From Epithemia pelagica (taxonomy: Eukaryota > Protista > Bacillariophyta), in contig OX337232.1 in assembly GCA_946965045.2 (NCBI GenBank), forward strand, positions 62,001-126,000: 64,000 bases of DNA. Direction: 5' to 3'. Positions 185 to 18,088 of this stretch are shown here, one piece after another (within the stretch, counting starts at the first letter, position 1; the number at the start of each line of letters is the position of its first letter). The notes below the pieces were generated by a model that made no database searches, was not told where the DNA came from, and saw only the letters and a list, made by a program, of their open reading frames with translations. The position numbers and the translations under genes are program-made.

Positions 185-1717
185 GTGACTCGCCGCCCGC
201 GTGTGCATCAGTCAAGTTTTTATGTGAACATTCCTCAACGAAGGACGCCACCATACAGCCCAATCGAACCACGAGAAAGAGCGGAATCGCAATCGCCTTG
301 TCCTTTTCCTCAGCAAAGCAACAGACAACGTATTAGTATGAGGTTTGCGAAACTGTTTGTCTCCTTTCTACTCGGTCCAAAACATTCTCAGGAACAATCC
401 TCCAGGTTGGATCACCTTTTGGAAATCCAACGCTCTCCGCTGGGGCTTGCTACCGGACGAATGGATCGCCCGTGGTTTCCTTCTCCAAGGATGAGTTCCA
501 TGGATGACGACCGCATTGAGTATATTTTTGATTTGTTGCGGGATGGCAAAGTGAAGCTCCCCCACGACAGCACCGTCACCAAGGACACTTTGCTGAAAGA
601 GTTGAAATTTTATGGATTGGATCAGAATACAACCGATATCGTATTGTCGAATGCCATTGAGGTTTCCTCTCGTCCGTCTCCTCCTCCTGAGGTTTACGCC
701 GTAGCAGCGGTCGATTATCTCTATTCGTTGGAACAAGCCTGTGAGAAGCGTATCAAGGAACTAGACAAGGAACTGTACCCTTTTGAATACAAGCGCAATT
801 GTACAACATTGGCTCTCCATATCTTTCGGGAATTCAAGAAAACGAATACATGGAAGATTCACGTGGACAAGTATGACGACAAGGAATCATTTGCGATTCT
901 AAAAAATGTAGTAAGCCATCGACCTCCAGGTTTGGAGAAGTTTCATCAGGACTGTTTGGCACACTTCGGCTTGGCGTACAAATTTATTCAAATCCAGTCT
1001 AGCAGCTGGTGGAGGTGGAGGAATGAGTTTCTTATAACATTGAAGAAAGTTCGTGGAGAAGACAAAGGGAGATGGGAACGCTCCGGGCTGGCTGCTGGAC
1101 GAATGGACCCCCCTTGGTTTTCTTCTCCAAAGAGTTCCAAGGATGACGACCGCATTCAGTATATTTTTGAGTTTCTGCGGCATGGTAAAGTCGAGCTCCC
1201 GCACGACAGTACTGTGACCAAGGAAACTTTGTTAAAAGAGTTGGAATTCTATGGACTAGAAAAGAATACCACCGATATCATGTTGTCGAAGGCCATTCAG
1301 GTCTCGTCCTCTCGTTCCTCCTCTCCTCCTCCAGAAGTATCCACCGTCGACGCACTCGATTACCTCGATTCGTTGGAACAAGCTTGTGAAGAGGATATCG
1401 AGAAACTCAAGGAGGAACTGTACCCTTTTGAATACAAGCGCAATTGTACAAAACTGGCTCTCTATATCTTTCGGGAATTGAAGAAACACCCCAATAAGTG
1501 GAAGATCCATGTAAGCGATGAATATAGCCGCGATTGGCGTGAGAAGGAAGCATACGCGACCGTTTCCAAGGTTCGCAACAATCGACCTCAAGGTTTGGAG
1601 AAGTTTCATCAAGACAGTTTGGCACACTTTGGCTTAGCGTACAAATGTATTGAACATAAGCGCCTTCGTCAGTATTCGAGTGATTTCGAGTTTATAATCA
1701 CATTGGAAAAAGCTTGA
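185..1717 (+). CDS. BTB1: two tandem [BTB/T1-like + shared C-terminal domain] modules
   Basis: 510-aa ORF (GTG start; first in-frame ATG at 338). DDDRIEYIFDLLRDGKVKLP...LLKELKFYGL and DDDRIQYIFEFLRHGKVELP...LLKELEFYGL match the C-terminal half of KCTD/T1 BTB; each is followed by a FHQD[CS]LAHFGLAYK module. True start uncertain. Confidence 0.8.
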   Translation: MTRRPRVHQSSFYVNIPQRRTPPYSPIEPRERAESQSPCPFPQQSNRQRISMRFAKLFVSFLLGPKHSQEQSSRLDHLLEIQRSPLGLATGRMDRPWFPSPRMSSMDDDRIEYIFDLLRDGKVKLPHDSTVTKDTLLKELKFYGLDQNTTDIVLSNAIEVSSRPSPPPEVYAVAAVDYLYSLEQACEKRIKELDKELYPFEYKRNCTTLALHIFREFKKTNTWKIHVDKYDDKESFAILKNVVSHRPPGLEKFHQDCLAHFGLAYKFIQIQSSSWWRWRNEFLITLKKVRGEDKGRWERSGLAAGRMDPPWFSSPKSSKDDDRIQYIFEFLRHGKVELPHDSTVTKETLLKELEFYGLEKNTTDIMLSKAIQVSSSRSSSPPPEVSTVDALDYLDSLEQACEEDIEKLKEELYPFEYKRNCTKLALYIFRELKKHPNKWKIHVSDEYSRDWREKEAYATVSKVRNNRPQGLEKFHQDSLAHFGLAYKCIEHKRLRQYSSDFEFIITLEKA

Positions 1718-2689
1718 AAGACAACCGAAGAGACTTTTTAAACCATTCCAAGAGCTCCTCCAAGTCTCTAAGGACACGACATTGCATTTGTTTGTCTGTA
1801 GCAATTGCCAAAGACTTTGAATACTATTAACCCGGACTTTATTTTTATGTTAAGCTGAACTATACATTCGCGGTCCCCATGGAATCGGGTAGTAATAGGA
1901 ATGGCGCCTTTGGGCGGAGCAATGGAGAAACCACCAACCGACTCCTATCGACGCACGTGGACGGACCCTGGCTGTTTCACCATACTAGTAGACGGACGAC
2001 TTGAGGCTTTGTCCCCAACGAATTCGGATCGAGCGAATCCTTGTCGCTTGTCGACGACGTGCTACTAGATACACGACACGACCATTTGTACTGCTACTTG
2101 CGTTTGTTCTGGTTGGAGCTATTCCACTAGCATATATACTTGTAGTAGTAGAGCCACATTCTCATCCTTCGGGTGTTGGTTGGTATTGGTCGACCGACGC
2201 GCAGAATCCCCGTCAATTTCTTCGAGGAGACACACATAAAAGACGACGATGAGACGGCGCACCCGTGTTTTGTTTGGTTTGGTCGGAACACGAACCATTC
2301 GTTTCGACTCCACCACAACCACCAGAAAGGCTATAGGTAGGTATACACTTGTTTGTCCACAACGAGTTTTGGATTGAGGAGAATCGTCCATGAGACTTTC
2401 TTGTTGTCTTGTTGTCCTTGAGCGTGTACTCCTTTGGCCTTGGAGTGTGATTGGGAGCATCCAATGAATGAATCATGTCTTTGCAGAAGTATAGCATAGA
2501 AGGGCTTAGTCCGACCAAAAATGGCGTGGTGGTTTCTCGAGATAGAGGAGGAGGAGGGTAAGGAGTGTGGGCGGAATCGTTTGTGTGCTTCTTGAAACAC
2601 GTGACATTCACTGAGTCGATACGACATGACCAACCAGAGGAGGGGGGAGGATGATCCAGCATCCTCCGCCGCTGTACTCCTTTCCACGA

Positions 2690-2826
2690 ACCCGCAGCAA
2701 CACGAGCAAGAGCAACCAGAGTCACCGCAGTCAGGCGAGTAGCAGTAGTAGCCACAAGAGTGTCACCACCTTTACCAGATTGGCACGATCCTTTTCATGT
2801 GCGGCACCCTTCTTTGCGTCCAAACC
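2690..2826 (+). pseudogene. Inverted fragment of the 5' part of the 1255-aa gene
   Basis: Encodes SHRSQASSSSSHKSVTTFTRLARSFS versus SHRSQASSSSSHKSVATFTGLARSLS in 5708-9475(-); matches the reverse complement of about 9080-9220. Confidence 0.8.
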
Positions 2827-3013
2827 AACCACACCAGTCCAATCATCTACCCACACAATCCCTGAATTTGGTTTCCATCCTTTCACAAGCACCCAAAACC
2901 AATCTCGTTGACAGCAAACTTTTGTTCCGTCCCTCCCGTTTCACCAACTTGTCCTGTCGTGGTGTTTCCTCCCACTCGCCCAGTTTCCTTTCCAACAAGA
3001 ACAACAAGCATTG

Positions 3014-4765
3014 ATGATGATGATACCGTTGTTGCACGGGAAGTTCTATGTTCGTAACCCGTCGTCCACCACCAACAACACAAAAATGACCCTCTGGAAC
3101 AACACGACGAAAAGTCTGTTCCCAGACGACTATACTGCGAACCGACGACAAAAGTTTCGAAATAATTATTTGTGCGACTCCCCCAGAGCCAGAGCGATTT
3201 CGCGCCAGTCAGATTTTTACGTGAACCCCAGCGGAGGAGCCGTCACAAGAGTCGTGACTCGCGCGCGTGTGCACCAGTCAAGTTTTTATGTGAACACTCC
3301 GCAACGACCAACACATAGCAAAAGTCCAATCAAACGGTGCACGAGCAAAAAACCACGAGAACGAGCGGAACCACAATCGCCTTGTCCTTTTCCTCAGCAA
3401 CACAACAAACGACGCATCAGTATGAGGTTTGCGAAACTGTTTGTCTCCTTTCTACTCGGTCCAAAATGTTCTCAAGAACAATCCTCCAGGTTGGATCACC
3501 TTTTGGAAATCCAACGCTCTCCGCTGGGACTTGCTACCAGACGAAAAAGTCGCCCGTGGTTTCCTTCTCCAAGGATGAGTTCCATGGATGACGACCGCAT
3601 TGAGTATATTTTTGATTTTTTACGGAATGGCAAAGTCGAGCTCCCCCAGGACAGCACAGTCACCAAGGACACTTTGTTGAAAGAGTTGAAATTTTATGGA
3701 TTGGACCAAAAAACAAGCGATATCGTGTTGTCAAACGCCATTGAGGTTGACGCTATCAAAACGGTCGATTATCTCTATTCCTTGGAACAAGCCTGTGAGA
3801 AGTATATCAAGCAACTTGACGAGGAACTTTACCCGTTTAAATACAAACGCGATTGTACAAAATTGGCTCTCCATATCTTTCGGGAATTCAAGAAAACGAA
3901 TAAATGGAAGATTCATGTGGACAAGGATGACGACTACGAAGCGTTTGCGAGTCTCTTAAATGTAGTAAGCCATCGACCTCAAGGTTTGGAGAAGTTTCAT
4001 CACGAATCTTTGGCACACTTCGGCTTGGCGTACAAATTTATTGAAAGTCAATCCAGTAGCTTGAGGAAGAGCAAGTTTATCATAACATTGAAAAAAGTTG
4101 GTGAAAAAGACAATGGGGGATGGCGACGCTCTCGGCTGCTTGCCGGACGAATGGATCCCCCTTGGCTTCCTTCTCCAAGTAGTTCCAAGGAGGACGACCG
4201 CATTGAGTATATTTTTGAGTTTTTGCGGAATGGTAAAGTCGAGCTCCCCCACGACAGCACAGTCACCAAGGAAACTTTGTTGAAAGAGTTGGTATTTTAT
4301 GGATTGAACGAGAATACAAGCGATATCGTGTTGTCGAATGCCATTCAGGTCTCGTCCTCTGGTCCCTCCTCTCCTCCTCCTGAGGTATCCGCTGTCGATG
4401 CACTCGATGATATCTTTTCGTTAGAACAATCTTGTGAAGAGCATATCAAGAAACTCAAGGAGGAACTGTACCGGTTTGAATACAAACGCGATTGTACAAA
4501 ACTGGCACTGTATATCTTTCGGGAGTTCAAGAAAACCCCCAACAAGTGGCAGATCTATTTGAGCAATAAAAGGAGCTGCGAGTGGTATGAGATGGAAGCA
4601 TACTTGACCGTTTCCGATATTCGCAACAATCGACCTCAAGGTTTGGAGACGTTTCATCAAGACAGTTTGGCACACTTTGGCTTGGCGTACAAATGTATTA
4701 AACATGAGCGCTTTGATTGGTACCCGTATGATGCCGAGTGTATAATCACATTGGAAAAAGCTTGA
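3014..4765 (+). CDS. BTB2: paralog of BTB1 with two modules
   Basis: Uninterrupted ORF (track 3011-4765, first ATG 3014) with the same two-module layout and the same ITLEKA end. Confidence 0.82.
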   Translation: MMMIPLLHGKFYVRNPSSTTNNTKMTLWNNTTKSLFPDDYTANRRQKFRNNYLCDSPRARAISRQSDFYVNPSGGAVTRVVTRARVHQSSFYVNTPQRPTHSKSPIKRCTSKKPRERAEPQSPCPFPQQHNKRRISMRFAKLFVSFLLGPKCSQEQSSRLDHLLEIQRSPLGLATRRKSRPWFPSPRMSSMDDDRIEYIFDFLRNGKVELPQDSTVTKDTLLKELKFYGLDQKTSDIVLSNAIEVDAIKTVDYLYSLEQACEKYIKQLDEELYPFKYKRDCTKLALHIFREFKKTNKWKIHVDKDDDYEAFASLLNVVSHRPQGLEKFHHESLAHFGLAYKFIESQSSSLRKSKFIITLKKVGEKDNGGWRRSRLLAGRMDPPWLPSPSSSKEDDRIEYIFEFLRNGKVELPHDSTVTKETLLKELVFYGLNENTSDIVLSNAIQVSSSGPSSPPPEVSAVDALDDIFSLEQSCEEHIKKLKEELYRFEYKRDCTKLALYIFREFKKTPNKWQIYLSNKRSCEWYEMEAYLTVSDIRNNRPQGLETFHQDSLAHFGLAYKCIKHERFDWYPYDAECIITLEKA

Positions 4766-5145
4766 AAGACAAACAAGGTGACTGCCATGAATAAGGGCTA
4801 CTCTTCCTAAACCATTCAAAGAGCTCCTCCAAGTCTCTGAGGACACGACATAGCAACTGTTATTCTGTAGCAATTCCGAAAGAATTGGAATAATACTTTC
4901 CCGAACGTTGTTTTTATGTCAAGCTGAACCATACATTCGCGGTTCCCATGCAATCGGGTAGAAGGACACCAGGATGGCGCGTTTGGGCGGAACAGTGGAG
5001 AAACCACCAATCAACTCGTATTGACTGCACGTGGACGGCCCCCTGGCTGTTTCACCATACTAGTAGACGGACGACTTGAGACTTTGCCCCCAACGAATTC
5101 GTATCGAGCGAATCCTTGTCGCTTGTCTTCGATGTAGTACTACAT

Positions 5146-5358
5146 ACAACCAATGAATCGAACATTGTGGTGGACAGGCATAACCACATGGAAGCAATTG
5201 CAACTCTTTCAAATGTAGTAAAGACAATCGACCAAAAGGTTTGGGGAAGTTCCATCACAACTGTTTGGGCACACTTTGGCTTGGCGTACAAATTTATCAA
5301 AAAAACTGTACTATCAGTACCTGGGCTGAGTATACGATAACTGTAGAAAAAGCTGGCA
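5146..5358 (+). pseudogene. Frameshifted C-terminal remnant of a BTB1/2-like module
   Basis: NIVVDRHNHMEAIATLSNVV...AHFGLAYKFI aligns to module 1 (KIHVDKDDDYEAFASLLNVV...AHFGLAYKFI) only with frameshifts; no BTB part. Confidence 0.75.
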
Positions 5359-5374
5359 AGTGAAATGTAAAATG

Positions 5375-5600
5375 GAGAGATTCAAAAATCAAGAACTATT
5401 TTCAAAGCATTGAGGATTACACACAATGCGACTTTGCTAAGTGATACGCTTCAATCCGTGAGATTCTTTGACGAGTATAGTATTTTAAAATCAAGCAGTA
5501 GAGAACAATGTTGTCCAAAATCAAGCTACCAGTTGGTTGCATTCGTACCGCCAAGACTGTGGAGCGTTCTTCGGCTTGACGTACAAAATCGGAAGGCATA
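5375..5600 (+). pseudogene. Degenerate remnant of a BTB4-like C-terminal domain
   Basis: tcg tac cgc caa gac tgt gga gcg ttc ttc ggc ttg acg tac aaa = SYRQDCGAFFGLTYK versus PYFQDCLAFFGLTYK in BTB4. Confidence 0.6.
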
Positions 5601-5707: not shown

Positions 5708-8700
5708 TCAGAAAGTGTTTGTCCACAACATGTCGTTGTGGGACAGTGTGTTTGTGCTTGTACTGTCGCCATCGAAATGGAATGAATGATTGTCGTAGAT
5801 AAACGCCAAATGTGGTCCACTTTCCGTGTCGGTTTCATCTTCGATCAAAAAGGCAGAGGAGTATGCTGGTTTCGATCGTAGAGGAGCGGGTGTTTTGCGG
5901 TTGCCATGGAATGGGTGCAGCTTGTCGGATGGAGTCGTTTTTGTGGTTGGAAGCCACAAACAAAGGTTCATTTCGGCATTGGGGTCACAAACTTGGCCCC
6001 CGCAATCCTCCTTGGCATCATCGTCGTCGTCGTGGTCGTCGTCGAGCAAGGCCAAAGATCGTGGTGTTTGGGAACAGCGAAGATTCTTATTGTTGGTGTC
6101 CAGAACACTGTAATCATCCTGACATTGCAATTCCCAAAAGTAATCTCGTTTTTGATGGTTGGACTGATAGGTTTTGTACTTGGCGCAGTGTCGTCGTCGT
6201 GGACTCTTGGGTTTGGTACTGGGCGAACGCTTGCGTCGTCGTGGAGAAACGCAACTCCTCGTGGTGGCGGTGGTGGTAGGTCGGTGCGCTCGGATGGTAA
6301 TCGCGTCTTCCTTATGGGGATCCAGGAGAATGCTGATTCCATCTTCACTGTCCTGGGGGGCGTGGCTGCTACTGGCCCCAATGCTATCGTCACTGCTGCT
6401 GCTACTGCCATTTCCGCTCGAGCGTCGTCGCGAAACGCCGACGGTACTTTCCATGCTGCGCTTGAGAATTTCAACGCCATGTTCCAAGAAGTGCACACGA
6501 AAGGGAGACCAAGGCTCCTCCGTATCGTCGTGGTTCGGTGGTTCTTGCGATTGCGATCGGTCTCTCCGTTGTTGGTGGTGTTCCAGGAGACTTTGAGTCG
6601 TCACATAAACGTGGTCCTTATTAGAGTGTGGGTGGTCACCAACAGTGGGTGTGCAGGAACTGGTCAAGGTTCGACAGGGATCCTTTGTTCTCCCACAGAC
6701 CTCGCCCGTGTACAGCAAGTCATCCTCGTCGTCGTCGTTGTCGTCATCGTCGAGCGAGGGGTGATTGGCCGCCACGGAATTGTCGGCATCGTAGTCATGA
6801 GTGTAATCACGACGATGGACAATACAGGAATCTTCGTCATCATCATCATCCTCGTCATCGTCTTCATGTCGACTCGTCGACGATCGCGTCGTATTCGTTC
6901 CAGTACTAGTTGAGGACCCGGTTTGAGTCGAATCAAGACTGCAATTAATGGCATCTTGCTTGGATGGTTTGCAGGGATAGTGCAACTCTTCGTCCTCGTC
7001 ATCCTTCTCCTCCTTTGTGGATTGTGGTCGGTCGTTTTCGTGAAGTACCACAATCACCTTGTTGTTCTTGTCGTTGCCCTTGGTATTCTTGAGTTGCTGT
7101 TGTGAGTGGGGAGAGTTTATATTTGTATGATTCTGGTCGCCCGAGCTCTTGTTCCTTGGATTGCTCCAATTTCGTTTGAGAAGAAGGGGCTTACTATTGG
7201 ATCGAATCGTTCCTCCTTTTCCTCGTTCTCGTAGTTGTCTGTTGCGATGCCGCTGATGCAAGAGACCAAACTTTTTCTTGGTCGAGAGACGGGGGCGTTG
7301 TGAGGACTGGTTGGGCAATGGCATTACTTCGGTACCTCCTCCTTCTACTTCTTCTCCTTCGGGCGATACAATTTGCAATTGGACCGCATTCGCCATGTTG
7401 GATCCCTGGACAATGGTAGTGGTGGTGGTGAGAGGTGCGTCCTGGTGGGTGGAAGAGGGGGAGCCAAGAGTCTCGGCAGCAGCACCCGCAAGAATAGGGG
7501 TATTGGTGCTGCGTCGTCGTCCCATTGGCCAAGCGATGGACCGTCGTCGTCGCCATCGGGGTGTCGTTGGTGTTGTGGTGGTGGTACGAGTCGAATCAGT
7601 GGCACCATTTTCGGGAGACAGGAGATTGGTATTCGTTGGTGTGGCAAAACACGTGTCCGTTGTTTGGGGTGTGGCGGAGCATGCAGTGGTGTCGTCCTTC
7701 CGGGAGTTGTTGGAGTTGTGGGAGTTGGTTCTCGTTGTTGTTGCGTTGGGAGAGGAGGTGCGTGGAAGGTCCTTGTGGGTGGTGTTGTTGGCGCTGGGGG
7801 GAGAAGAATGAACCACGTCGGAGGCGGCGGCGGCGGTAAACCGTCGGAGACGTTCGGTATGATTGCGCAGAATGCTCCGCAATACGGGGGCCTTCTGCAC
7901 GTCGTGGTCCTGGTTGTTGTTGTTCTCGTGGGGTTTGTCGTTGGCCGGTTGCGGCACGGCAAACGGCTGGTCTGGTGGTGTTGTTTCCTGGTTCTCCTTC
8001 TCCTTGTCGTCGTCCGAATCATCCTTCTTGTCAGTTTCGTCTGGTTCTTCTTGCTCTTCGTCGTCGTCCTCTTCAAACGACAGTAGTGACGGCAAGAGTC
8101 GTTGCAGTGGACTGACGAGACGGTGTTTGCTGACATTGCCCACAAAGGGGGTTTCCTCTTGGGGTTGTTGGTGCAACCGCTCCAGGCTCGTCAAATCATG
8201 ATTGGATTGGTACTTCTTGTTGTTCTTGTTCTTTTCAAAAGACGAAAGGATTTTGGGTTCCAACAATCGTGGTTCTTCTTCTTCTTGTTGTTGTTGTTCT
8301 TCTTCTTCTTTGGATTGTGGGAGCAATCGTGAAAGGGTATTGTTGTTCTTTTCAAACGACGAAATAATTTTGGGTTCCAACAGTTGGGGTTCTTCTTGTT
8401 CTGGTTCTTGTGGGAGCAATCGTGAAAGGGTAGTGTTGCCAGAATCATTCTGACTCGTCGGGTTCTTGGTGGTGGTGGTACTCGGGTTCTTGTGCTTGTT
8501 GTTGTTGAGGCGGTGATGGTTCGCAGCAGCTGGAAATTGCTGGGAGGATACCGAGGAAATGGATGACCCAAGGGACCAGGACGACGAGGACGAAGCGGCG
8601 TCACTCTCCTCTTGTTCATTTTCGTCCTCCTGGTTCTGGTCGTCGTCGTGGGACGAGTTCGGTTCCAGCACACTACGTCCTTGTTGTTGGTTGGTAGTCG

Positions 8701-9475
8701 TCGTCAAGGAGTGGCTGTGGGGAACTGGTTGGTTCTTGTTCTTCTTGTTCCAACTGTTCTGGTTCCTAGTATTCCTATTCTTCTTGGTCTTGTTGTGTTG
8801 TACTGGATGGGGACACAGAACTTCGAGTGCCACAGCGGCATTCTCCTTGCTTCTTCTTCGTCTGGTCGAGTACGCGGGGCGAGTGGTGGGCGGAAGCACC
8901 ACGACCGGATAACGATGGAGTGGCTCCTCCTTATCCTCATGGTGGGAGAAGGAACTGACCGATTGGGTTGGTGCAGAATGATGATGATGAGAGTGCTGCG
9001 GTTCGTTCGAAACAGCCAAGACTGCTGGAACACGATTCTCCTCCTCCTCCTCCTCCTCTTGGTCGTGATGTTGTCGTTTGGTACCAAAGGAAGGTGCCGC
9101 ATACGACAAGGATCGTGCCAATCCGGTAAAGGTGGCGACACTCTTGTGGCTGCTGCTGCTACTGGCCTGACTGCGGTGACTTTGCTTGCTCGTGCTGTGG
9201 CTCGTGTTGCCGCTGCGAGTTTTGGAAAGTAGTACGGCGGCGGATGCCAGATCAGTCTCCTCGTCTTGTGGTGCTTGTACCGACGAAACCGAGGACGATG
9301 ACGATCGCGCCAAGAGGGGAATGTGATCCGAGGGAGCCGCGTGAGATTGTCGTTGTTGGTGTTGACGACGACGTTGGTGGCGTCCTTGTTTCCAGTGCAC
9401 CAATTGTTGCTTTTTGCGAGCCGCCGCCGCCGCAAACGACAAGGATGAAGTCAAAGTGCTGGTTCCATCCGTCAT
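5708..9475 (-). CDS. 1255-aa low-complexity, probably disordered protein of unknown function
   Basis: ATG-initiated 3.8-kb ORF with poly-D/E/S/T/N/Q tracts and an internal repeat (NTLSRLLPQ...LLEPKI[IL]SSFEKN x2). The C-terminal segment NLCLWLP...DNHSFHFD...NDMLWT is conserved in a paralogous fragment. No recognised domain. Confidence 0.75.
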   Translation of the reverse strand: MTDGTSTLTSSLSFAAAAARKKQQLVHWKQGRHQRRRQHQQRQSHAAPSDHIPLLARSSSSSVSSVQAPQDEETDLASAAVLLSKTRSGNTSHSTSKQSHRSQASSSSSHKSVATFTGLARSLSYAAPSFGTKRQHHDQEEEEEEENRVPAVLAVSNEPQHSHHHHSAPTQSVSSFSHHEDKEEPLHRYPVVVLPPTTRPAYSTRRRRSKENAAVALEVLCPHPVQHNKTKKNRNTRNQNSWNKKNKNQPVPHSHSLTTTTNQQQGRSVLEPNSSHDDDQNQEDENEQEESDAASSSSSWSLGSSISSVSSQQFPAAANHHRLNNNKHKNPSTTTTKNPTSQNDSGNTTLSRLLPQEPEQEEPQLLEPKIISSFEKNNNTLSRLLPQSKEEEEQQQQEEEEPRLLEPKILSSFEKNKNNKKYQSNHDLTSLERLHQQPQEETPFVGNVSKHRLVSPLQRLLPSLLSFEEDDDEEQEEPDETDKKDDSDDDKEKENQETTPPDQPFAVPQPANDKPHENNNNQDHDVQKAPVLRSILRNHTERLRRFTAAAASDVVHSSPPSANNTTHKDLPRTSSPNATTTRTNSHNSNNSRKDDTTACSATPQTTDTCFATPTNTNLLSPENGATDSTRTTTTTPTTPRWRRRRSIAWPMGRRRSTNTPILAGAAAETLGSPSSTHQDAPLTTTTTIVQGSNMANAVQLQIVSPEGEEVEGGGTEVMPLPNQSSQRPRLSTKKKFGLLHQRHRNRQLRERGKGGTIRSNSKPLLLKRNWSNPRNKSSGDQNHTNINSPHSQQQLKNTKGNDKNNKVIVVLHENDRPQSTKEEKDDEDEELHYPCKPSKQDAINCSLDSTQTGSSTSTGTNTTRSSTSRHEDDDEDDDDDEDSCIVHRRDYTHDYDADNSVAANHPSLDDDDNDDDEDDLLYTGEVCGRTKDPCRTLTSSCTPTVGDHPHSNKDHVYVTTQSLLEHHQQRRDRSQSQEPPNHDDTEEPWSPFRVHFLEHGVEILKRSMESTVGVSRRRSSGNGSSSSSDDSIGASSSHAPQDSEDGISILLDPHKEDAITIRAHRPTTTATTRSCVSPRRRKRSPSTKPKSPRRRHCAKYKTYQSNHQKRDYFWELQCQDDYSVLDTNNKNLRCSQTPRSLALLDDDHDDDDDAKEDCGGQVCDPNAEMNLCLWLPTTKTTPSDKLHPFHGNRKTPAPLRSKPAYSSAFLIEDETDTESGPHLAFIYDNHSFHFDGDSTSTNTLSHNDMLWTNTF

Positions 9476-10263
9476 GGTGGCTGTATGAATTTACTAGACA
9501 AGGAACACTCGTCTCCATGAGAATGAGAAAGCAACACCCGAACGACGGCGCAAAGGGACCTTGCTGGAGTCTGTGACGGCCGGATCGATCCGAGGCGGCC
9601 GACTGTGGCGTTTCGGCGCACCTATAGTTCTAGGCTTTTCTTTGAAACTATGTGACGGGCCGGCCTTGGATCTTGATAAACAGCTGTTCGGGAGGGAGCC
9701 CATTTGGGGGAACGCGCGCACGACGAGCCTTCCAAAACACAACCATTCGTAGGGTGGCACACTTTTTTAGACATGCGCATCCAACAAAAAGAGAGATTCT
9801 CTGTCCCACCCCAAAACGTTTGGTTTTGTGAGCTGCTGTGATTCTTCCATTGGTAGATTCCAGCCACCACAGGAGTTCTCGTTGTTGTTGTTGTTGTTGC
9901 TGTGCTGGATGCAAGGGGAGTGTGACCTTGTCGGCCGTGGAATGGAAACATGCCATGCGTCTCTCCCCTTTTGCCGTGGTGGAATTCTCAGTACGTATAC
10001 CTTCAATTTCGACAGTCCCACAACCATTCGTATGGATTCTCGTGCTGATTCCACAGTCTTTAGTTCAAGACTCATTCAAAAGACACCACTGGGATACGAG
10101 GTTGCATCCTTCCATGGATTTGAAGGACGGACCGTCCACTGGAAAAATCAGTCCACTGGAAAAATCTGTATTCCCTTCTTGTGTCCGTAATGGAGTGGTG
10201 CAAGACTATTTCCGCTCGACATGGGGAAAACTCGTACTCTAGACCCCAACTTTGGTTCGTATA

Positions 10264-10355
10264 ATGAAGGCAAGACTTCAAAGTCTGTTTTTAATCCACT
10301 ATTCCTTGACTTCAAAGTCTGTTTTTAATCCACTATGAAGGCAAGACTTCAAAGT
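10264..10355. repeat. Left half of a short tandem array (core gacttcaaagtctgtttttaatccact) split by the retrotransposon
   Basis: atgaaggcaagacttcaaagt recurs at 10264 and 10335 (71-bp period); the array resumes at 16992-17053. Confidence 0.9.
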
Positions 10356-10512
10356 TGAAATTGTGCATGTATCCGTGAGAGATCTAATTGTATGTCACAT
10401 TGTATAACCGTTCCAAACGGTCAGCGATACGAGCCGGCCGTCTTCGCCAAACTGGACGACGACAGTAGTAGAAAATAATTTTATAATCTCTTTGAAACAC
10501 GAAATTTTAGCA
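10356..10512 (+). repeat. 5' LTR (157 bp)
   Basis: TGAAATTGTG...TTTTAGCA; read base by base as identical to the 3' LTR. Confidence 0.95.
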
Positions 10513-10529
10513 GTTTATCAGACCCATCG
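10513..10529 (+). other. Putative primer-binding site, non-canonical
   Basis: GTTTATCAGACCCATCG directly after the LTR. Assigned by position only; it lacks the TGG complementary to tRNA CCA. Confidence 0.45.
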
Positions 10530-10569
10530 TCTGCTTTGAGATTGTTTTTGTTGTGAAGTACGAAGTACT

Positions 10570-12165
10570 ATGGTCCTCACCGCTGCCCAGAACACCGCTT
10601 TCTTCGAGAACCCTGATCAAATGGGCATTCCCCATGCGACAGTGGTCCAGCTTCAAGTTGAAGGGATTTCGACAATCCTTGATTTGGCCGACTTCGACTC
10701 GGAAACTCTCAAGCAGTTGGCCGAGAACCTCCGTAAGCCGGCAGGGAGAATCCCCGATCCCAACCCTGGAGCTGCCCCTGGCGCAACGATACCTACACCA
10801 CCGTTTACCTTCGGCGCGAAGTCTCAGCACCGCCTGGGCGTAGCCTGTGAGCTGGTCCGATTCTATGAAACGGTTGGGCGTGATCCATCGGCTGGTAATA
10901 TGCGTTGGACGCATGTTGTAAAGAATTTCGAGGTCCAGTGGAAGGCTTTGAAGGACCGAAAGGATGGTGACGATCCAGAAGTTCCTAAAATCACCAAGGC
11001 CCTACCGATCATCAAATGGACGGAAGCATTTCACGACTATGCCAACCGCGTGATCGGTGCGAGAATGATTCCCCTTTCATATGTCATCAGGCCCGAGGTC
11101 GATGTCCCGGTTGTTGCACCTCCCCAGGCAGCAAATAAGCCCCATTCGGAAGAACATGGTTCTGTTGAGGCGGAACTAGTTGCCCGTGCCTCACATGGAC
11201 ATGAATTATATCGTGAGGACAATGCTACCGTGTACTACAGTTTGGAAGAGGCGACGCGTGGTACGTCCTATGCCGCGTTGATTAAACCTTTCCAACGTAC
11301 AAAAGATGGTAGGGGAGCCTGGAATGCTCTCACAAATCAATATGCGGGGAAAGACAAATGGGAGTCGGAGATCAAGAAACAAGATGATCTACTCCATACC
11401 CGTATCTGGAAAGGGCAAAACAATTTTCCCCTTGAGGGATTTTTGGCCCAACACCGAAATGCATTCGTGTCTATGCAACAGTGTGCTGAGCACGTTGAGT
11501 ACCAACTGCCCAATAAACATACCCGAGTAGGGTATTTACTCGAAGGCATCCAATGTTCGGATGCTGGATTACAGGCTGCTATGGCCAGTGTGCGGACCGA
11601 TGACGGCCCGAATGGAATGCGTAATAATTTTGAAGCAGCAGTGGCACATTTACTGCCATATGACCCCGTTGCTAAGAAAAGGGCTGCTGCTGGAGCCAAA
11701 CGACAGTCGGCACAAATCTCTTCTGTCGATAATGAAACCAGTGAATCAACCGTTGCTGAGGTCAGTGGGGCCAGTGCTGGTGGTGGAAAGTCTACAGCCA
11801 AGCCGAGCATTGGCAAAACAGGCGTCCACTTTCGATACCACACACCCGATGAATATCACACCCTATCCAATGAGCAAAAGGATGAGCTCCGTGAGTGGCG
11901 CAAAGCCAATCCTCAGAAGTCGGAAGGGAAAGGCAAGAGTGACCGAAAGGCCAAACGAGCAGCACGACGCCAAATCTCGTCGGCAGTCGCAAAAGCCATC
12001 AAGAAATTGGCAAAAGAATCCCAACCGACAAATGACGACCAAGTCAGCCTCGACGCCCAGGTTGCATCCATGGTTCAGAACGCATTAGCACAAGAGGCAG
12101 ATTTGAAGCCTCCTGCAAAGAAGCAAACAACTCTTCAGTCCATCCTGAAGTCTGTTCGAAATTGA
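10570..12165 (+). CDS. gag: Gag of the copia element (531 aa)
   Basis: First ORF after the 5' LTR, upstream of and in frame with pol; no canonical CCHC knuckle seen. Confidence 0.85.
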   Translation: MVLTAAQNTAFFENPDQMGIPHATVVQLQVEGISTILDLADFDSETLKQLAENLRKPAGRIPDPNPGAAPGATIPTPPFTFGAKSQHRLGVACELVRFYETVGRDPSAGNMRWTHVVKNFEVQWKALKDRKDGDDPEVPKITKALPIIKWTEAFHDYANRVIGARMIPLSYVIRPEVDVPVVAPPQAANKPHSEEHGSVEAELVARASHGHELYREDNATVYYSLEEATRGTSYAALIKPFQRTKDGRGAWNALTNQYAGKDKWESEIKKQDDLLHTRIWKGQNNFPLEGFLAQHRNAFVSMQQCAEHVEYQLPNKHTRVGYLLEGIQCSDAGLQAAMASVRTDDGPNGMRNNFEAAVAHLLPYDPVAKKRAAAGAKRQSAQISSVDNETSESTVAEVSGASAGGGKSTAKPSIGKTGVHFRYHTPDEYHTLSNEQKDELREWRKANPQKSEGKGKSDRKAKRAARRQISSAVAKAIKKLAKESQPTNDDQVSLDAQVASMVQNALAQEADLKPPAKKQTTLQSILKSVRN

Positions 12166-15100
12166 TGGCGTCCGGCGGCTCTTATCTCCTCGCTCTCATC
12201 AAGAGGAGAGAGTGAGACAGAAGTGCTGCAGCCGGATTCAACAACGACGTGGGACCCAGGGGTGGCCCACATTTCAAATTTTCACAGCACGCGTGATGTT
12301 GCTAGCAATGTTGCGTCGGCTGCAACCCATGGTGATGACAGCGATGAGACCATGGATGACAACGAAACATCCTTCGACGGACCTCGAACGGATCTAGACA
12401 GTCACGCAAATATGCCGGTCGTAGGCCGAAACTCCTACGTGATTGAGAGGCTTGAAAGGACAGTAGATGTCAAGCCATTTTCAAATGATTACAAGGCCAT
12501 GACGGCCGAACTGGTTCATGCTGCCGTACGGTACGAGTCACCATATAACGGCAAAACGTATATTCTGGTAATACGAAACGCTATATACGTCCCAACCATG
12601 AACAACAACCTAATTCCTCCTTTCATGATGAGAGAAGCAGGAATCCATGTCAACGAAAGAGCCAAGATACACACGAGTGAGCCCACAATTGATGACCACT
12701 CGATTGTTTTCCCATCAACAGGTTTCCGAATCCCCTTGTCTCTCCATGGCGTATTCTCATTCTTCCCTTCGGACAAGCCAACAGAAGATGATCTTCAGGC
12801 TGGGTACGACACCTATGTGTTAACACCTTCTGTCTGGCAGCCTCATTCAACGGTCTATGCTGACAACGAGGCTGGGAGAGTGGATTGGGAGGGGAATATC
12901 AAGGAGCAGAGAGATTGGTCCATCCGCGTTGTGTTGGATGACTTGCCTCCAGTCGACGAATCGACAATGACAGCTAATGTGGCATCTGCTTTGGAAGCAA
13001 AATCAATTGACTGCACGTGTGGGCAAAGAGAGGCTGGCAGGCCAGAGAGGAGTAAGCGGCAAATAAGAACGGCCGATTCCCAACTCCACGAAATCTCAGC
13101 TGTGCTTGTAGAAGAAACCATGATCAATACTTTGACAGAAAGGGCAGAGTTTGGCCATGACTGCATGGCAATTGGGGCAACAGATGTGGACGAAAACCCA
13201 TATGTGGTAACGGACGATGATGACAGGTCCATGAGTGATGGCTCGCATGAGTCGGTGAGCATTACAAGTGAAATGGATCTCGATGAATTCTTTGTTTCCG
13301 GTGTGACTGCTGGTAAATCACATGGAGTGGATGCTGCGCATCTGTCAAAAGTGTGGCGAATCAGCCATGACGATGCCAAAAGGACAATACAAGCTACGTC
13401 ACAGCATAGTGCCCGTCCAACTGACCCAACTCTCACCCAAAATTATGGTACGAATGACCGCATGCTTCGATACCGCCGAATCCACGAATACTTCTACATG
13501 GATACCTTCTTTGCTACAAAGCACGGGGGTAAATCTTCTCGTGGAAACACGTGCTGCCAACTGTTTGTGACGGACAAAGGTTTCATCTACGTGGTACCGA
13601 TGAAACGTAAATCCGAGGTCATGTCTGCTGTCAAGCAATTTGCCAAGGAAATTGGAGCTCCCGATGCCATCATCTGTGATATGGCACAGGAACAGGTCTC
13701 GTCAGACCTAAGAATGTTCCTGAATGACATAGGAACGACCCTTCGCGCGTTGGAGGAAGGGACACCATGGGCGAACAAGGCTGAACTCTACATCAAATTG
13801 ATGAAAGAGGCCGTTCGCAAGGATATGCGGGAATCCCACTCCCCTCTCCCTTTCTGGGACTATTGCCTTGAGAGGAGGGTGAGGATTTACAATCTGACGG
13901 CCCGCGATTATCACAAGGTACGAGGCTCCAACCCGTACACACTGACTCTTGGGGAGGAGGGCGACATATCAAATTTATGTCAGTTCCAATGGTACCAGTG
14001 GTGTTATTTTAGAGAACACACCGCTCGATTTCCCCACAACCAAGAGGTCCTTGGACGAGTTTTGGGCCCTGCACGAGGCGAGGGAAATGAGATGGCTCAG
14101 TGGGTATTGAAGGCGAATGGACGCATTGTCCCACGGCGTTCCGTGCGTGCCTTGCACCCCGCTGAAGAAACGAGTTCCAGTGAGCAATCAAAGCGACAAG
14201 CTTTTGACGCATTGATCGAGAGGAGGTATGGGAACTCCATCAATCCTCCACTACACCCCATCTCAGAAAATTCCGAAACTTTTGATCCGTATGAAGATGA
14301 TCAAGAACCAGCTAGACCAATTCCAGAGATCGAAGACGCCGTCGACTTCAACGGTAAACTGCTGGATCAAGCACCGGTCTATGACAGGCTGATCAATGCA
14401 GAAGTCCAACTGCAGCTTGATGAACGAATGGCGAAAGGTATGGTCAAGCGTCGTGCACTGGGACCTGATGGAAAAGTATCAGGGAAATACGACCATAACC
14501 CAACAAACAACTCCATCATATATGAAGTAGAATTCGATGATGGAACGGTGAAAGAGTATGCCGCGAATGTGATTGCAGAGAATATGCTCTCACAGGTAGA
14601 CTCAGACGGAGTCACGATTCAGCTATTGGAAAGCATCATTGACTACAAGAGAGATGAGTCGGTCGCCGTGTCTAAGGCGGACAAATACGTCTACAATAAG
14701 CATGGACGACGACGGCTACGGAAAACCACAGCTGGCTGGTGGCTACTCGTACGGTGGCGCGACCAGTCTGAGTCCTGGATGAGGCTGTGCGAAATGAAGG
14801 AGTCATATCCAATTGAGACGGCAGAATTTGCGATCGCAAGAGGAATAGATGACGAACCGGCCTTCATATGGTGGGTTCGATACACCATACGACGAAGGGA
14901 TGCGATAATTGCGGCCCTGAAAACGCGTGCAAAACAAATCCGACACAAATATGGGATTGAGATTCCCACGAGTGTGGAGCATGCCAAGGAATTAGATCGC
15001 AAGAACGGAGACGATTACTGGATGAAAGCTCTCGCAAAGGAAATGTACAATGTGGGAGTTGCTTTTGAGATCCTGGAACCTGGTCAGCCTCCGCCGAAAG

Positions 15101-16680
15101 GCTGGCATAAGGTGACAGGCCATCTGGTGTGGGACGTGAAGATGGACTTTACCCGCAAAGCCAGATGGGTATTGGATGGGCACAAGACACCAGACCCTGA
15201 GGGATCCACTTTTGCTGGAGTTGTATCTAGAGAGAGTGTTCGGATTTCCTTCACCTATGCTGCGTTGAATGGGCTGGATGTCTTTGCGGCCGACATTAGA
15301 AATGCCTATCTCCAAGCGCCATCATCGCGCAAGGATTACATTATTTGTGGCCCCGAGTTTGGGCTCGAGAATGTGGGGCGAGTTGCGCTGATACATCGGG
15401 CACTCTATGGGGGAAAGACAGCCGGAAAAGATTTCCGTAACCATTTGCGGTCTTGCATGCATTATCTGAAATTCCAGTCATGCCCTGCCGACCCTGATGT
15501 GTGGATGAGACCAGCTGAGAAAGCTGATGGTACCCCATATTATGAATTTGTGCTTCTGTATGTTGACGATGCACTGGTGATCAGTGAGAATGCCGAGAGG
15601 ATCCTACGAGAGGAAATCGGTCGATATTTTGAACTCAAGGAAGAGTCCATTGGAGCGCCAACGCTCTACCTTGGTGGAAGAGTACGAAAGGTACAATTGG
15701 AAAACGGTGTGTATGCATGGGCCTTCAGTTCGTCGCAATACGTTCAAGCCGCTGTGAAAGGGGTGGAAGAATGGATAAGCAAGCGGGCTGATGATCGTTG
15801 GAAGCTGCCAGCAAAGGCCGAAACACCGATGAGATCGACATATCGTCCGGAGCTTGATGTGACCCCTGAGCTTGGTCCAGAGGAGGCATCATACTATCAG
15901 TCGTTGATTGGTGTGTTGCGATGGATTGTCGAGCTGGGGAGAGTCGACATCTGTCTGGAAGTGTCCGTAATGTCTTCACATCTGGCTCTACCAAGGGAAG
16001 GACACCTTGAGCAAGTCTTCCAAATCTTTGCCTATCTCAAGAAATACCACAATGCCGAGTTGGTTTATGATCCGAGTGATCCCGTTGTGGAGATGAGTGA
16101 TTTTGAGAGGAGAGACTGGACGGCAAGCGAGTTTGGCCATATGGAGGGTAAGGAAGAATATCCGCCAAATATGCCTGAGCCTCGCGGTATGGGTTTTGTG
16201 ATGCGAGCGAAGGTTGACGCCGACCATGCGTCGGACACTGTTACCCGCCGATCCCGCACGGGCTTCTTTGTATTCCTGAACAGTGCCCTGGTCTTTTGGT
16301 GGAGTAAGAAACAGACGAGTGTTGAGTCCTCGTCTTTCGGGTCAGAATTCATTGCCATGAAGCAATGTTGTGAGTACTTACGTGGTTTGAGGTACAAGCT
16401 CCGCATGATGGGGATTCCATGTGAGGGACCTGCTTTTATTTACGGCGACAACCAATCGGTATTAGCCAACACGACGATACCCGACTCTGCTTTGAAGAAG
16501 AAGAGCCAGTCGATTGCGTATCATTTTGTAAGAGAAGGATCTGCCAGAGACGAATGGCGGACAGCTTATGTGAACACCCATGAAAATGAGGCAGATCTGT
16601 TGACGAAACTTCTGCCGAGCGGTGAAAAGAGGAGAGGGTTTGTGATGAAGCTCCTACACCACATTTTCAGAACTGGATGA
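12166..16680 (+). CDS. pol: Pol polyprotein (protease, integrase, chromo-like module, RT, RNase H), same frame as gag after one TGA
   Basis: Protease LDSHAN; integrase core YMDTFF...ICDMAQEQ...PWANKAELYI; RT LLYVDD; RNase H VDADHA...SSFGSEFIA...GDNQSV...NEADLLTK. The frame is open from 12166. Confidence 0.95.
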   Translation, partial: WRPAALISSLSSRGESETEVLQPDSTTTWDPGVAHISNFHSTRDVASNVASAATHGDDSDETMDDNETSFDGPRTDLDSHANMPVVGRNSYVIERLERTVDVKPFSNDYKAMTAELVHAAVRYESPYNGKTYILVIRNAIYVPTMNNNLIPPFMMREAGIHVNERAKIHTSEPTIDDHSIVFPSTGFRIPLSLHGVFSFFPSDKPTEDDLQAGYDTYVLTPSVWQPHSTVYADNEAGRVDWEGNIKEQRDWSIRVVLDDLPPVDESTMTANVASALEAKSIDCTCGQREAGRPERSKRQIRTADSQLHEISAVLVEETMINTLTERAEFGHDCMAIGATDVDENPYVVTDDDDRSMSDGSHESVSITSEMDLDEFFVSGVTAGKSHGVDAAHLSKVWRISHDDAKRTIQATSQHSARPTDPTLTQNYGTNDRMLRYRRIHEYFYMDTFFATKHGGKSSRGNTCCQLFVTDKGFIYVVPMKRKSEVMSAVKQFAKEIGAPDAIICDMAQEQVSSDLRMFLNDIGTTLRALEEGTPWANKAELYIKLMKEAVRKDMRESHSPLPFWDYCLERRVRIYNLTARDYHKVRGSNPYTLTLGEEGDISNLCQFQWYQWCYFREHTARFPHNQEVLGRVLGPARGEGNEMAQWVLKANGRIVPRRSVRALHPAEETSSSEQSKRQAFDALIERRYGNSINPPLHPISENSETFDPYEDDQEPARPIPEIEDAVDFNGKLLDQAPVYDRLINAEVQLQLDERMAKGMVKRRALGPDGKVSGKYDHNPTNNSIIYEVEFDDGTVKEYAANVIAENMLSQVDSDGVTIQLLESIIDYKRDESVAVSKADKYVYNKHGRRRLRKTTAGWWLLVRWRDQSESWMRLCEMKESYPIETAEFAIARGIDDEPAFIWWVRYTIRRRDAIIAALKTRAKQIRHKYGIEIPTSVEHAKELDRKNGDDYWMKALAKEMYNVGVAFEILEPGQPPPKGWHKVTGHLVWDVKMDFTRKARWVLDGHKTPDPEGSTFAGVVSRESVRISFTYAALNGLDVFAADIRNAYLQAPSSRKDYIICGPEFGLENVGRVALIHRALYGGKTAGKDFRNHLRSCMHYLKFQSCPADPDVWMRPAEKADGTPYYEFVLLYVDDALVISENAERILREEIGRYFELKEESIGAPTLYLGGRVRKVQLENGVYAWAFSSSQYVQAAVKGVEEWISKRADDRWKLPAKAETPMRSTYRPELDVTPELGPEEASYYQSLIGVLRWIVELGRVDICLEVSVMSSHLALPREGHLEQVFQIFAYLKKYHNAELVYDPSDPVVEMSDFERRDWTASEFGHMEGKEEYPPNMPEPRGMGFVMRAKVDADHASDTVTRRSRTGFFVFLNSALVFWWSKKQTSVESSSFGSEFIAMKQCCEYLRGLRYKLRMMGIPCEGPAFIYGDNQSVLANTTIPDSALKKKSQSIAYHFVREGSARDEWRTAYVNTHENEADLLTKLLPSGEKRRGFVMKLLHHIFRTG

Positions 16681-16823
16681 AACACAGATGGGTGACGAGT
16701 GGATTACGTACGGAGCGGAACCACTCGGTTAGAATGCGGTGGACGTAGCCATGTTGGTGAACCACCCGAAATACGAAATTGTGGGAACGGTTGCAAGGTT
16801 ACCCCATGCGGTGGGATCACCTT

Positions 16824-16831
16824 GAGAGGAG
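16824..16831 (+). other. Polypurine tract
   Basis: GAGAGGAG, 3 nt upstream of the 3' LTR. Confidence 0.7.
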
Positions 16832-16834
16832 TGT

Positions 16835-16991
16835 TGAAATTGTGCATGTATCCGTGAGAGATCTAATTGTATGTCACATTGTATAACCGTTCCAAACGGT
16901 CAGCGATACGAGCCGGCCGTCTTCGCCAAACTGGACGACGACAGTAGTAGAAAATAATTTTATAATCTCTTTGAAACACGAAATTTTAGCA
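16835..16991 (+). repeat. 3' LTR (157 bp)
   Basis: Identical to 10356-10512. Confidence 0.95.
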
Positions 16992-17053
16992 AAAGTCTGT
17001 TTTTAATCCACTATTCCTTGACTTCAAAGTCTGTTTTTAATCCACTATTCCTT
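16992..17053. repeat. Right half of the split tandem array, including the TSD
   Basis: aaagtctgtttttaatccactattcctt followed by gacttcaaagtctgtttttaatccactattcctt. Confidence 0.9.
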
Positions 17054-17080
17054 AGGATAGAGATTGACTTTGGGATAGGA

Positions 17081-18088
17081 TCACGGCGGTAGGTGCTTCT
17101 TCACACGGACAGCGATACGGTTCTTCTTCTTCGAAGAGTCGTCAACATTACCCCAGCAGTCTGCCCAAAACAGCCTGTGGTACATTAAGCCAAATTCATT
17201 CAAACAATCTTGATGATAGGTGCCCAACTCATCGTCCGGGGACATATCGAAAATGTCCTTCACTGTCTCAAAATAGTCATCATCCTTGTATATCAAAAGC
17301 TGCACCTTGCTGAACTGCCGGTATTGTTGAAACACGTAAAGAGCAAAGTCCAGACACTTGCGTTTGTAGGAAATTTGGTTCGCCTGCCGGGTAATCTCCG
17401 CAACGCGTTGTGCGTGATGCTGCTTTTCCATGGCAAACAAGTGTTGCACCGAATCGTAGGCGGGAAACGGAGCCACCTGAATGGCGTTGGCACAGTCCTC
17501 CACAAGAAACCCAAAATACTGGAATTCCACCAACAAGGATTCCTTGGTAACAACCACGCTGTTGTACGGGAGAATCACTTTGCCATCCCGCATGAAATCC
17601 AAAACGTAGCGGAAGCGATCACCATCGCGGTCGATAAAAATCGGCTCACGGTTCAGTTCGGCAGTCGTTGCAGCAGCACCATCGCATTTCTCTTTCGGTG
17701 TTTCCTTGGGACCGCTGCTATCCATATCCTCGAGCAGGTCAAAGCATAGAGTTTCTTTCATTTGTTCTTCTACGGCATCCACTTGGGCCTCCGGATCGGC
17801 CGTGTCGCCACCTGTAGAATTGGAGCCATTTTTGGAGTTTTCAGCATCCTTTTCACCGGCATCCATTGCTTCTGGTTTGGTTGGTCCGTTGGAAACCGTA
17901 CCGGGTGCATCACTATTCTTCAGGGTCTGTGTCCCTACCAGTTGAGCAAGCTTGGTATCCGGAAAGCGCTCGAGAAGAGACCGTGAAATCTCATATCGAG
18001 TTCCACCCACGACAAAGCAAACGGTGTTCGACGGAGCAGCACCACTGTGGCTATCTGCAACCATGATGTCTGTTTGCTCTCGAACCAT
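17081..18088 (-). CDS. BTB3: KCTD/T1-type BTB protein, the most canonical member
   Basis: VCFVVGGTRYEISRSLLERFPDTKLAQL...IFIDRDGDRFRYVLDFMRDGKVILP...EFQYFGF with a long insertion, then YHQDCLNEFGLMY. ATG at 18088. Confidence 0.9.
   Translation of the reverse strand: MVREQTDIMVADSHSGAAPSNTVCFVVGGTRYEISRSLLERFPDTKLAQLVGTQTLKNSDAPGTVSNGPTKPEAMDAGEKDAENSKNGSNSTGGDTADPEAQVDAVEEQMKETLCFDLLEDMDSSGPKETPKEKCDGAAATTAELNREPIFIDRDGDRFRYVLDFMRDGKVILPYNSVVVTKESLLVEFQYFGFLVEDCANAIQVAPFPAYDSVQHLFAMEKQHHAQRVAEITRQANQISYKRKCLDFALYVFQQYRQFSKVQLLIYKDDDYFETVKDIFDMSPDDELGTYHQDCLNEFGLMYHRLFWADCWGNVDDSSKKKNRIAVRVKKHLPP

Follow-up and report, generated by a model that had tools for sequence, protein, structure and literature searches.

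The 64,000-nucleotide stretch of contig OX337232.1 analysed here (the window) carries two neighbouring genes of the BTB_2 type, g1 and g2, in which two short elements of the C-terminal domain of the second repeat unit are hypervariable between paralogs. Diversifying selection on this domain, driving the paralogs apart, is the best reading of the data and on balance a probable one, although it is held with limited confidence. The gene g1 (338-1717, forward strand; BTB1 of the preliminary description) comprises 459 codons from a conserved ATG (MRFAKLF...) to the stop codon within an open frame at 185-1717, and g2 (3422-4765, forward strand; BTB2) comprises 447 codons within an open frame at 3011-4765. 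They are tandem paralogs, each an internal duplication of a single unit, with units A and B at 455-1051 and 1097-1714 in g1 and at 3539-4099 and 4145-4762 in g2, all on the forward strand. A unit consists of a BTB_2 part followed by a C-terminal alpha/beta domain of about 125 residues.

The preliminary description had noted two patches of almost purely non-synonymous divergence between the C-terminal domains of the two genes, and its counts are reproduced in a codon-by-codon comparison. Patch 1 (1499-1585, forward strand, aligned with 4547-4633) corresponds to unit-B residues 135-163, which form strand b1, a loop and helix 147-161, and 13 of its 29 codons carry replacements, none is silently changed and 16 are nucleotide-identical. 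Patch 2 (1640-1717, forward strand, aligned with 4688-4765) covers the b2-b3 hairpin together with the stop codon and has nine replacement codons and one silent codon among 26. The scaffold between them (1586-1639, forward strand, aligned with 4634-4687), containing a loop, helix 170-176 and the start of strand b2 with the sequence PQGLE.FHQDSLAHFGLA, is near-invariant as had been described, with one replacement and one silent change in 18 codons, and its ratio of non-synonymous to synonymous substitution rates (dN/dS, omega) is 0.08 over eight second-unit copies. By the Nei-Gojobori method, omega between g1 and g2 is 4.7 in patch 1 (dN 0.309, dS 0.066), 3.1 in patch 2 (dN 0.247, dS 0.080) and 0.49 for the whole gene (dN 0.117, dS 0.237), where 94 of the 447 aligned codons are replacement, 46 silent-only and 307 identical. 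Shuffling of codon classes produces a 29-codon window with 13 replacement and no silent codons anywhere in the gene with a P of about 0.03, and the last 72 codons hold 23 replacement and two silent codons versus 71 and 44 in the rest of the gene (Fisher P 0.004). The clustering of replacement codons is therefore real.

Further copies of the gene allow the same segments to be followed beyond this pair. The window is part of ENA contig ctg1226l, on which a 459-residue protein identical to that of g1 is annotated, and a second contig of the same assembly, ctg1216l, is collinear with it and has flanks that are 96% identical; the two are taken to be diverged haplotypes or homeologs. On the window haplotype are g1, g2 and two copies upstream of the window, W0 and WA, and ctg1216l carries L0, LA, LB (a single unit), LC, LD and LE. 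Allelic pairs are formed by g2 and LE (dS 0.049), WA and LA, and W0 and L0. The sample for the codon analyses consists of eight second-unit (B) and nine first-unit (A) sequences from both contigs.

Among the eight B copies, variation is concentrated in two cores that sit among nearly invariant codons in the nucleotide alignment. Core 1 (1514-1540, forward strand, aligned with 4562-4588 in g2) spans nine codons at alignment columns 141-149, corresponding to the loop after b1 and the first turn of the following helix, and core 2 (1652-1693, forward strand, aligned with 4700-4741) spans 14 codons at columns 187-200, corresponding to the hairpin tip with the adjoining end of b2 and beginning of b3. 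Both cores are rich in aromatic and charged residues, both contain in-frame indels of one to three codons among the other paralogs, and many of their codons differ at two or three positions. A tree-free scan of minimum-spanning changes per column, with the unit-wide silent rate as the neutral yardstick, identifies the cores as the fastest segments of the unit in an unbiased search of the eight copies, so that the two patches are real hypervariable elements. In core 1, 21.8 replacement changes are counted against 9.2 expected (P 5e-4, window-corrected 0.11), and in core 2 the count is 39 against 13.9 (P 2.5e-8, or 5e-6 after multiplication by 195 windows), the best 14-codon window for core 2 being shifted one codon downstream of the defined core, at columns 188-201. 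Replacement changes in the cores thus outpace the unit-wide silent rate by a factor of 2.4-2.8. Along the unit, silent changes vary little (0.22-0.40 per codon), while replacement changes per codon reach 2.67 in the cores versus 0.06-0.77 elsewhere, and the silent changes in core 1 are as expected (2.2 vs 2.1). With the windows specified beforehand, both also come out on top in the subsets LA/LB/LC/LD (P 0.002) and LA/LB/LC (P 0.013). In the A units, no scan window exceeds the neutral expectation, and the same columns have an omega of about 0.9.

These results bear on an explanation by pure chance, namely that g1 and g2 are an ordinary diverging pair whose two most extreme windows happened to catch a reader's eye. 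The windows were indeed chosen after inspection, and for the pair the permutation P remains just about 0.03 after correction for position, but the same two places are top-ranked in copies that the reader never compared, both carry indels, and both drive the signal in the site models described below, which makes pure chance a highly improbable account.

Recombination among the copies is pervasive and affects how the substitution pattern can be modelled. The pairwise homoplasy index (PHI) test gives P <=0.001 for the B units and 0.017 for the A units. A GARD-like breakpoint search based on the corrected Akaike information criterion (AICc) lowers the AICc stepwise from 4403 for a single tree to 4223 when alignment codons 72, 102 and 132 are taken as breakpoints, and to 4202 with one extra breakpoint at codon 151, for which codon 185 fits equally well; with 151 and 185 together, the AICc of the C-terminal segment falls from 1777 to 1767. 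Both of these breakpoints lie between the cores, in agreement with a re-assortment of the cores among g1, LB, LC and LD. The gene g1 is a mosaic with core 1 as in LB and core 2 as in LD, and LB and LC have a common core 2; judged from these shared segments, g1 looks like an LB/LD recombinant. The LB copy (L001 9878-10663, on the other contig) is without a first unit and begins 26 nt after the stop codon of LA, and the frames are intact in all two-unit genes. The resulting difference in copy number, with three two-unit genes on ctg1226l versus four plus one single-unit gene on ctg1216l, fits unequal crossing-over, as expected.

Positive selection was assessed with the GY94/F3x4 site models M0, M1a, M2a, M7, M8 and M8a in the author's own implementation, with branch lengths fully optimised. 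Single-tree models were set aside in view of the recombination detected by the PHI and GARD-like analyses; they give a likelihood-ratio test statistic (LRT) of 21.9 for M2a against M1a (P 2e-5) and 23.6 for M8 against M7. Analysed alone, the partitions 0-72, 72-102 and 102-132 have LRTs of about 0 and omega values of 0.28, 0.79 and 0.32, and the signal is confined to partition 132-208, for which M2a is preferred over M1a with an LRT of 21.4 (P 2e-5) and 27% of sites at omega 4.5. With three local trees the LRT for this partition is 14.1 (P 8.5e-4, 31% of sites at omega 3.9), and it is 13.7 (P 0.001) when gapped columns are removed and 9.9 (P 0.007) once the most divergent clade is left out. 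Simulation of four data sets under the fitted null yields LRTs of 0.01-1.2. The BTB part is under purifying selection, with an M0 omega of 0.28 and an LRT of 0 in partition 0-72 and a tree-free omega of 0.40. In the A units, M2a is not significantly better than M1a (LRT 3.9, P 0.14). An M0 fit restricted to the cores gives omega 5.5 and differs from omega = 1 (P 0.001), a result that is discounted in that the cores were chosen by amino-acid variability.

The P value of the same test nevertheless ranges from 2e-5 to 0.09 depending on how recombination is handled, and a number of observations weigh against selection. When the whole unit is fitted jointly over four partitions with shared site classes and full optimisation, M2a against M1a gives an LRT of 4.7 (P 0.09), and in the joint model M8 against M7 gives P 0.08 and M8 against M8a P 0.015. 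The low joint LRT is not due to approximation, since fixing the M0 branch proportions gives 4.4 and full optimisation 4.7; rather, it arises because the site-class proportions are shared with three partitions that lack fast sites. When the silent changes within the cores themselves serve as the reference, tree-free counting puts omega at 1.84 (P 0.066), and in the windows of the preliminary description omega is 1.4-1.5 (P about 0.2). The sample comprises only eight sequences in four to six lineages, recombination is finer than the partitions, and the maximum-likelihood code is the author's own. For the g1-g2 pair, the patches contain about 29 silent sites, at which about six silent changes are expected under neutrality and two are seen (P about 0.05, uncorrected), and the dN of the patches (0.25-0.31) is close to the gene-wide dS (0.24). 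Set against the duplicated non-coding 3′ flank, which has about 14% mismatches on average and one window at 25% by sliding identity between the duplicated blocks, the patch dN is roughly double, while the mismatches in the patches (27% and 20%) lie not far above that flank. In the same windows, other paralog pairs have omega values of 0.4-1.5. The pair by itself thus cannot establish omega above 1. Within the cores, substitutions are distributed over the three codon positions as 28:25:17, indistinguishable from 1:1:1, and core 2 has about twice the silent changes expected (8 vs 4), an excess that suggests an older history of this segment, more frequent mutation or alignment errors near the indels. 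The support for omega above 1 in the C-terminal domain is accordingly moderate and model-dependent. Of the selection proposed in the preliminary description, what stands is that site models of the C-terminal partition favour an omega above 1 (LRT 14-21, P <=0.001), and what does not carry through is significance in the joint model and in the tree-free counts; sites with omega above 1 persist after recombination is taken into account locally and nearly vanish in the joint fit.

Much of this evidence is shared with an alternative that is plausible but doubtful, in which the cores are structurally tolerant loops that drift near neutrality (omega about 1) and accept in-frame indels, and in which the all-replacement appearance of the g1-g2 pair results from the small number of silent sites, from windows picked after inspection and from recombination. 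The similarity of patch dN to gene-wide dS, the near-uniform codon-position spectrum, the range of omega in other pairs, the omega of about 0.9 for the same columns in first-unit copies, the non-significant tree-free values (omega 1.4-1.8) and the joint partitioned P of 0.09 are all what such loops would produce. Unconstrained drift is, however, difficult to reconcile with the rejection of M1a by the C-terminal partition at P <=0.001 under several schemes, with a core replacement rate of 2.4-2.8 times the silent rate whose scan-corrected P is 5e-6 in core 2 (0.11 in core 1), or with segments that are confidently modelled as ordered strand, helix and hairpin. Comparison of alleles adds a further argument against it, as the cores differ at only three of 258 sites between alleles versus about eight expected at the allelic silent rate, and are therefore not free of constraint today.

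The same allelic comparison speaks against an ongoing arms race of the kind invoked in the preliminary description, as the core sequences are nearly the same in the alleles of any given paralog. The pattern looks like divergence between paralogs followed by conservation.

A mutational or recombinational origin of the cores is improbable. It would involve indel-linked or multi-nucleotide mutation, or short conversion tracts from diverged donors, giving the cores a deeper history than their flanks and inflating replacement and silent differences alike. The indels of one to three codons in both cores, the many codons changed at two or three positions, the doubled silent changes of core 2 and the location of breakpoints 151 and 185 inside or beside the patches (PHI P <=0.001) are in line with such an origin, but there is no indel between g1 and g2 in either patch, and donors under purifying selection would bring many silent differences, of which core 1 shows only the expected number. 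As for specific sources of variation, a donor cassette was looked for and no second copy of a g1 or g2 core occurs in the 64-kb window at up to three mismatches. A base-specific mutator such as that of a diversity-generating retroelement (DGR) is rejected solely by inspection of the g1-g2 substitutions, which start from all four bases.

The location of the fast sites in the protein is consistent with selection acting on particular elements of the C-terminal domain. An AlphaFold2 model of g1 unit B, built from a 28-row alignment, has a mean predicted local distance difference test score (pLDDT) of 81, with values of 83-96 in the C-terminal domain, and predicts a long helix at residues 83-130, strand b1 at 136-140, a loop at 141-146, helix 147-161, a short helix at 170-176 and the b2-b3 hairpin at 180-189 and 197-205. 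Residues assigned to the fast class with a posterior above 0.95 are 142, 143, 144, 148, 154, 158, 188-192 and 194, and they map to discrete elements of the model, namely the loop after b1, positions spaced along the following helix, and the hairpin tip. Parallel strands are usual in a strand-helix-strand crossover, and if b1 and b2 are parallel, both cores would lie at the same end of the sheet; the predicted topology likewise suggests that the variable sites may be exposed and contiguous. A Foldseek search of the PDB with the unit-B model finds no convincing relative, the top rows being KCTD5, KCTD1 and KCTD7 with E values of 0.14-0.6 and a TM score of about 0.2. A VIA wide search of the PDB with the same model gives a best Z of 5.2 to unrelated proteins, with no KCTD chain among the 50 matches listed. 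A full-length AlphaFold2 model from an alignment of seven sequences is poor (pLDDT 52, below 50 at the BTB N-terminal part) and gives only the repeated secondary-structure pattern.

The genes g1 and g2 are neighbours in a tandem array of KCTD-like (BTB_2) genes that is young and varies in copy number. Under diversifying selection, the paralogs would have been parted by selection for amino-acid change at the loop after b1 and the start of the next helix, at more sites along that helix and at the tip of the b2-b3 hairpin, while the remainder of the protein stays under purifying selection. Unequal crossing-over and gene conversion re-assort the two cores into new combinations, each variant then being conserved. 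By analogy with BTB substrate adaptors, we infer that the variable elements could form a partner-binding surface through which each paralog meets a different partner; any link of the array proteins to Cul3 is similarly conjectural. A bolder version, which is unlikely on present evidence, is that the array constitutes a combinatorial recognition repertoire, in which the two hypervariable loops of a novel alpha/beta domain are held apart between paralogs by selection and re-assorted through gene conversion and unequal crossing-over, so that a diatom would possess a set of KCTD-like adaptors, each recognising a different fast-evolving partner. If so, viral or parasite proteins would be candidate partners, as would mating or self-recognition factors, and the array would represent the protist equivalent of the arms-race families of adaptors in nematodes and plants. 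Diatoms are major primary producers, and very little is known about their recognition of pathogens, partners or self; a species-restricted, copy-number-variable array of BTB adaptors with two fast-evolving, recombining surface elements in the last domain would, if confirmed, provide a concrete candidate recognition system with defined residues. If the loops are merely unconstrained, the array would instead illustrate clearly that recombination between tandem paralogs is able to exaggerate or conceal signals of positive selection.

Several known systems offer points of comparison. Thomas reportedly found in 2006 site-specific positive selection in the substrate-binding domains of MATH-BTB and F-box families. 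The expanded MATH-BTB (BATH) and F-box adaptors of nematodes and grasses are characterised by lineage-specific tandem expansion and by a conserved BTB part joined to a fast-changing second domain that is thought to select the substrate (PMC4091423, PMC6883508). The g1/g2 array resembles these families in its lineage-specific tandem expansion with copy-number change and in the combination of a conserved BTB part with a fast-changing second domain. Unlike them, g1 and g2 have no MATH or F-box domain in Pfam, their BTB domain is of the T1/KCTD type (PF02214) with only the C-terminal half recognisable, their variable domain is an uncharacterised alpha/beta domain, and they have an internal two-unit duplication with the signal in the second unit only. 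The most likely reading of this analogy is that the array may work like the expanded MATH-BTB and F-box adaptors without being a member of those families. With the KCTD proteins, g1 and g2 share a BTB_2 match above the curated cut-off, the order of a BTB followed by a C-terminal domain, and the weak top Foldseek rows of unit B. They differ from KCTD proteins in having no KCTD_C match in Pfam and no structural match better than E 0.14 and TM about 0.2, and in the N-terminal half of the BTB, which looks degenerate in unit A and is missing from unit B. In Seminavis robusta, expanded BTB/POZ families respond to sexual reproduction and are listed among the families holding genes with a piN/piS suggesting positive selection (PMC7335047). 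That species probably belongs to the same phylum as the source of the window, since the ESM-Atlas clusters that come closest, both in shape and in sequence features, consist of Bacillariophyta BTB_2 proteins. The Seminavis robusta paper gives family-level statistics only, with no localisation of variation to loops, and, unlike the account given here for g1 and g2, it describes no two-unit architecture and no re-assortment of cores by recombination (PMC7335047). Selection on the g1/g2 array would, by analogy, fit this report of expanded, reproduction-biased BTB/POZ genes.

The assignment of the genes to BTB_2 is based on Pfam PF02214, which g1 matches in two stretches with 41.6 bits (E 1.6e-10) and g2 in two stretches with 39.3 bits (E 8.4e-10), against a curated cut-off of 21.4. 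The matches are limited to positions 54-90 of the 94 in the profile and hence to the C-terminal half, and a complete BTB_2 domain with the N-terminal strand and helix (the V.F.VGG..Y.. part) was not found in g1 or g2 with the Pfam profile. In unit A, an alignment by eye suggests a degenerate N-terminal half (FVSFLLGPK), and in unit B this half is absent; distant paralogs and the proteins P0008 and P0009 have a full T1-type BTB ahead of the same C-terminal domain. The N-terminus of g1 (338-440, MRFAKLFVSFLLGPK...) resembles a signal peptide at first sight. It may be a degenerate BTB N-terminal half, because alignment by eye matches it to the first BTB strand of distant paralogs (ISFLVGG.., VSFLVEG..).

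Each gene lies within a duplicated block on the forward strand, the first at 93-2073, comprising g1 and about 350 nt of 3′ flank, and the second at 3165-5148, and the two are 82.0% identical across 2041 columns in a self-BLAST comparison. Directly downstream of the second block is a fragment of a further unit with the C-terminal domain only (5148-5390, forward strand), which is 78% identical by BLASTN to 841-992 and 3895-4041 and gives tblastn matches at 5149-5301 and 5226-5390. In run X4, a single 1487-nt contig spans 3427-4883 with 33 mismatches and 30 gap letters, its limits falling 5 nt past the g2 ATG and 118 nt beyond the g2 stop codon; it looks transcript-like but could be either the transcript of an allele or the product of an assembly break at the repeat borders. 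The sequencing runs yielded short contigs only. By tblastn, the 64-kb window contains 14 family members, including about a dozen more distant paralogs. The family is very rare in public data, with 14 matches among 1.84 billion representatives, and word-indexed protein searches return two and four proteins.

The array is directly followed by a 1255-residue low-complexity frame rich in Ser, Thr, Asp, Asn and Gln (5708-9475, reverse strand), and the same gene (1240-1255 residues) occurs after the array on both ctg1226l and ctg1216l. It is far more diverged between the two contigs (79-92% identity) than the flanks (96%). At 2646-2825, the spacer between g1 and g2 contains an inverted, 80% identical copy of this gene's 5′ end (9076-9260), so that part of the adjacent gene was included in the duplication from which the array arose. 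Farther along, a gag-pol retrotransposon-like pair of frames (10570-12165 and 12223-16680, forward strand, in the same frame) forms a 6-kb element at 10570-16680. It is missing from ctg1216l, where the segment of the window at 9729-17165 corresponds to only about 0.8 kb, and it looks like a haplotype-specific insertion beside the array. Amid the BTB cluster is a frame for a GFO/IDH/MocA oxidoreductase (34698-35933, reverse strand) whose nearest ESM-Atlas clusters are all bacterial, which taken alone is no evidence of gene transfer. One distant BTB paralog (59383-60075, forward strand), whose conserved YMRNG.V motif is interrupted by an in-frame stop, is probably a pseudogene, and its neighbour at 53590-54288 is intact.

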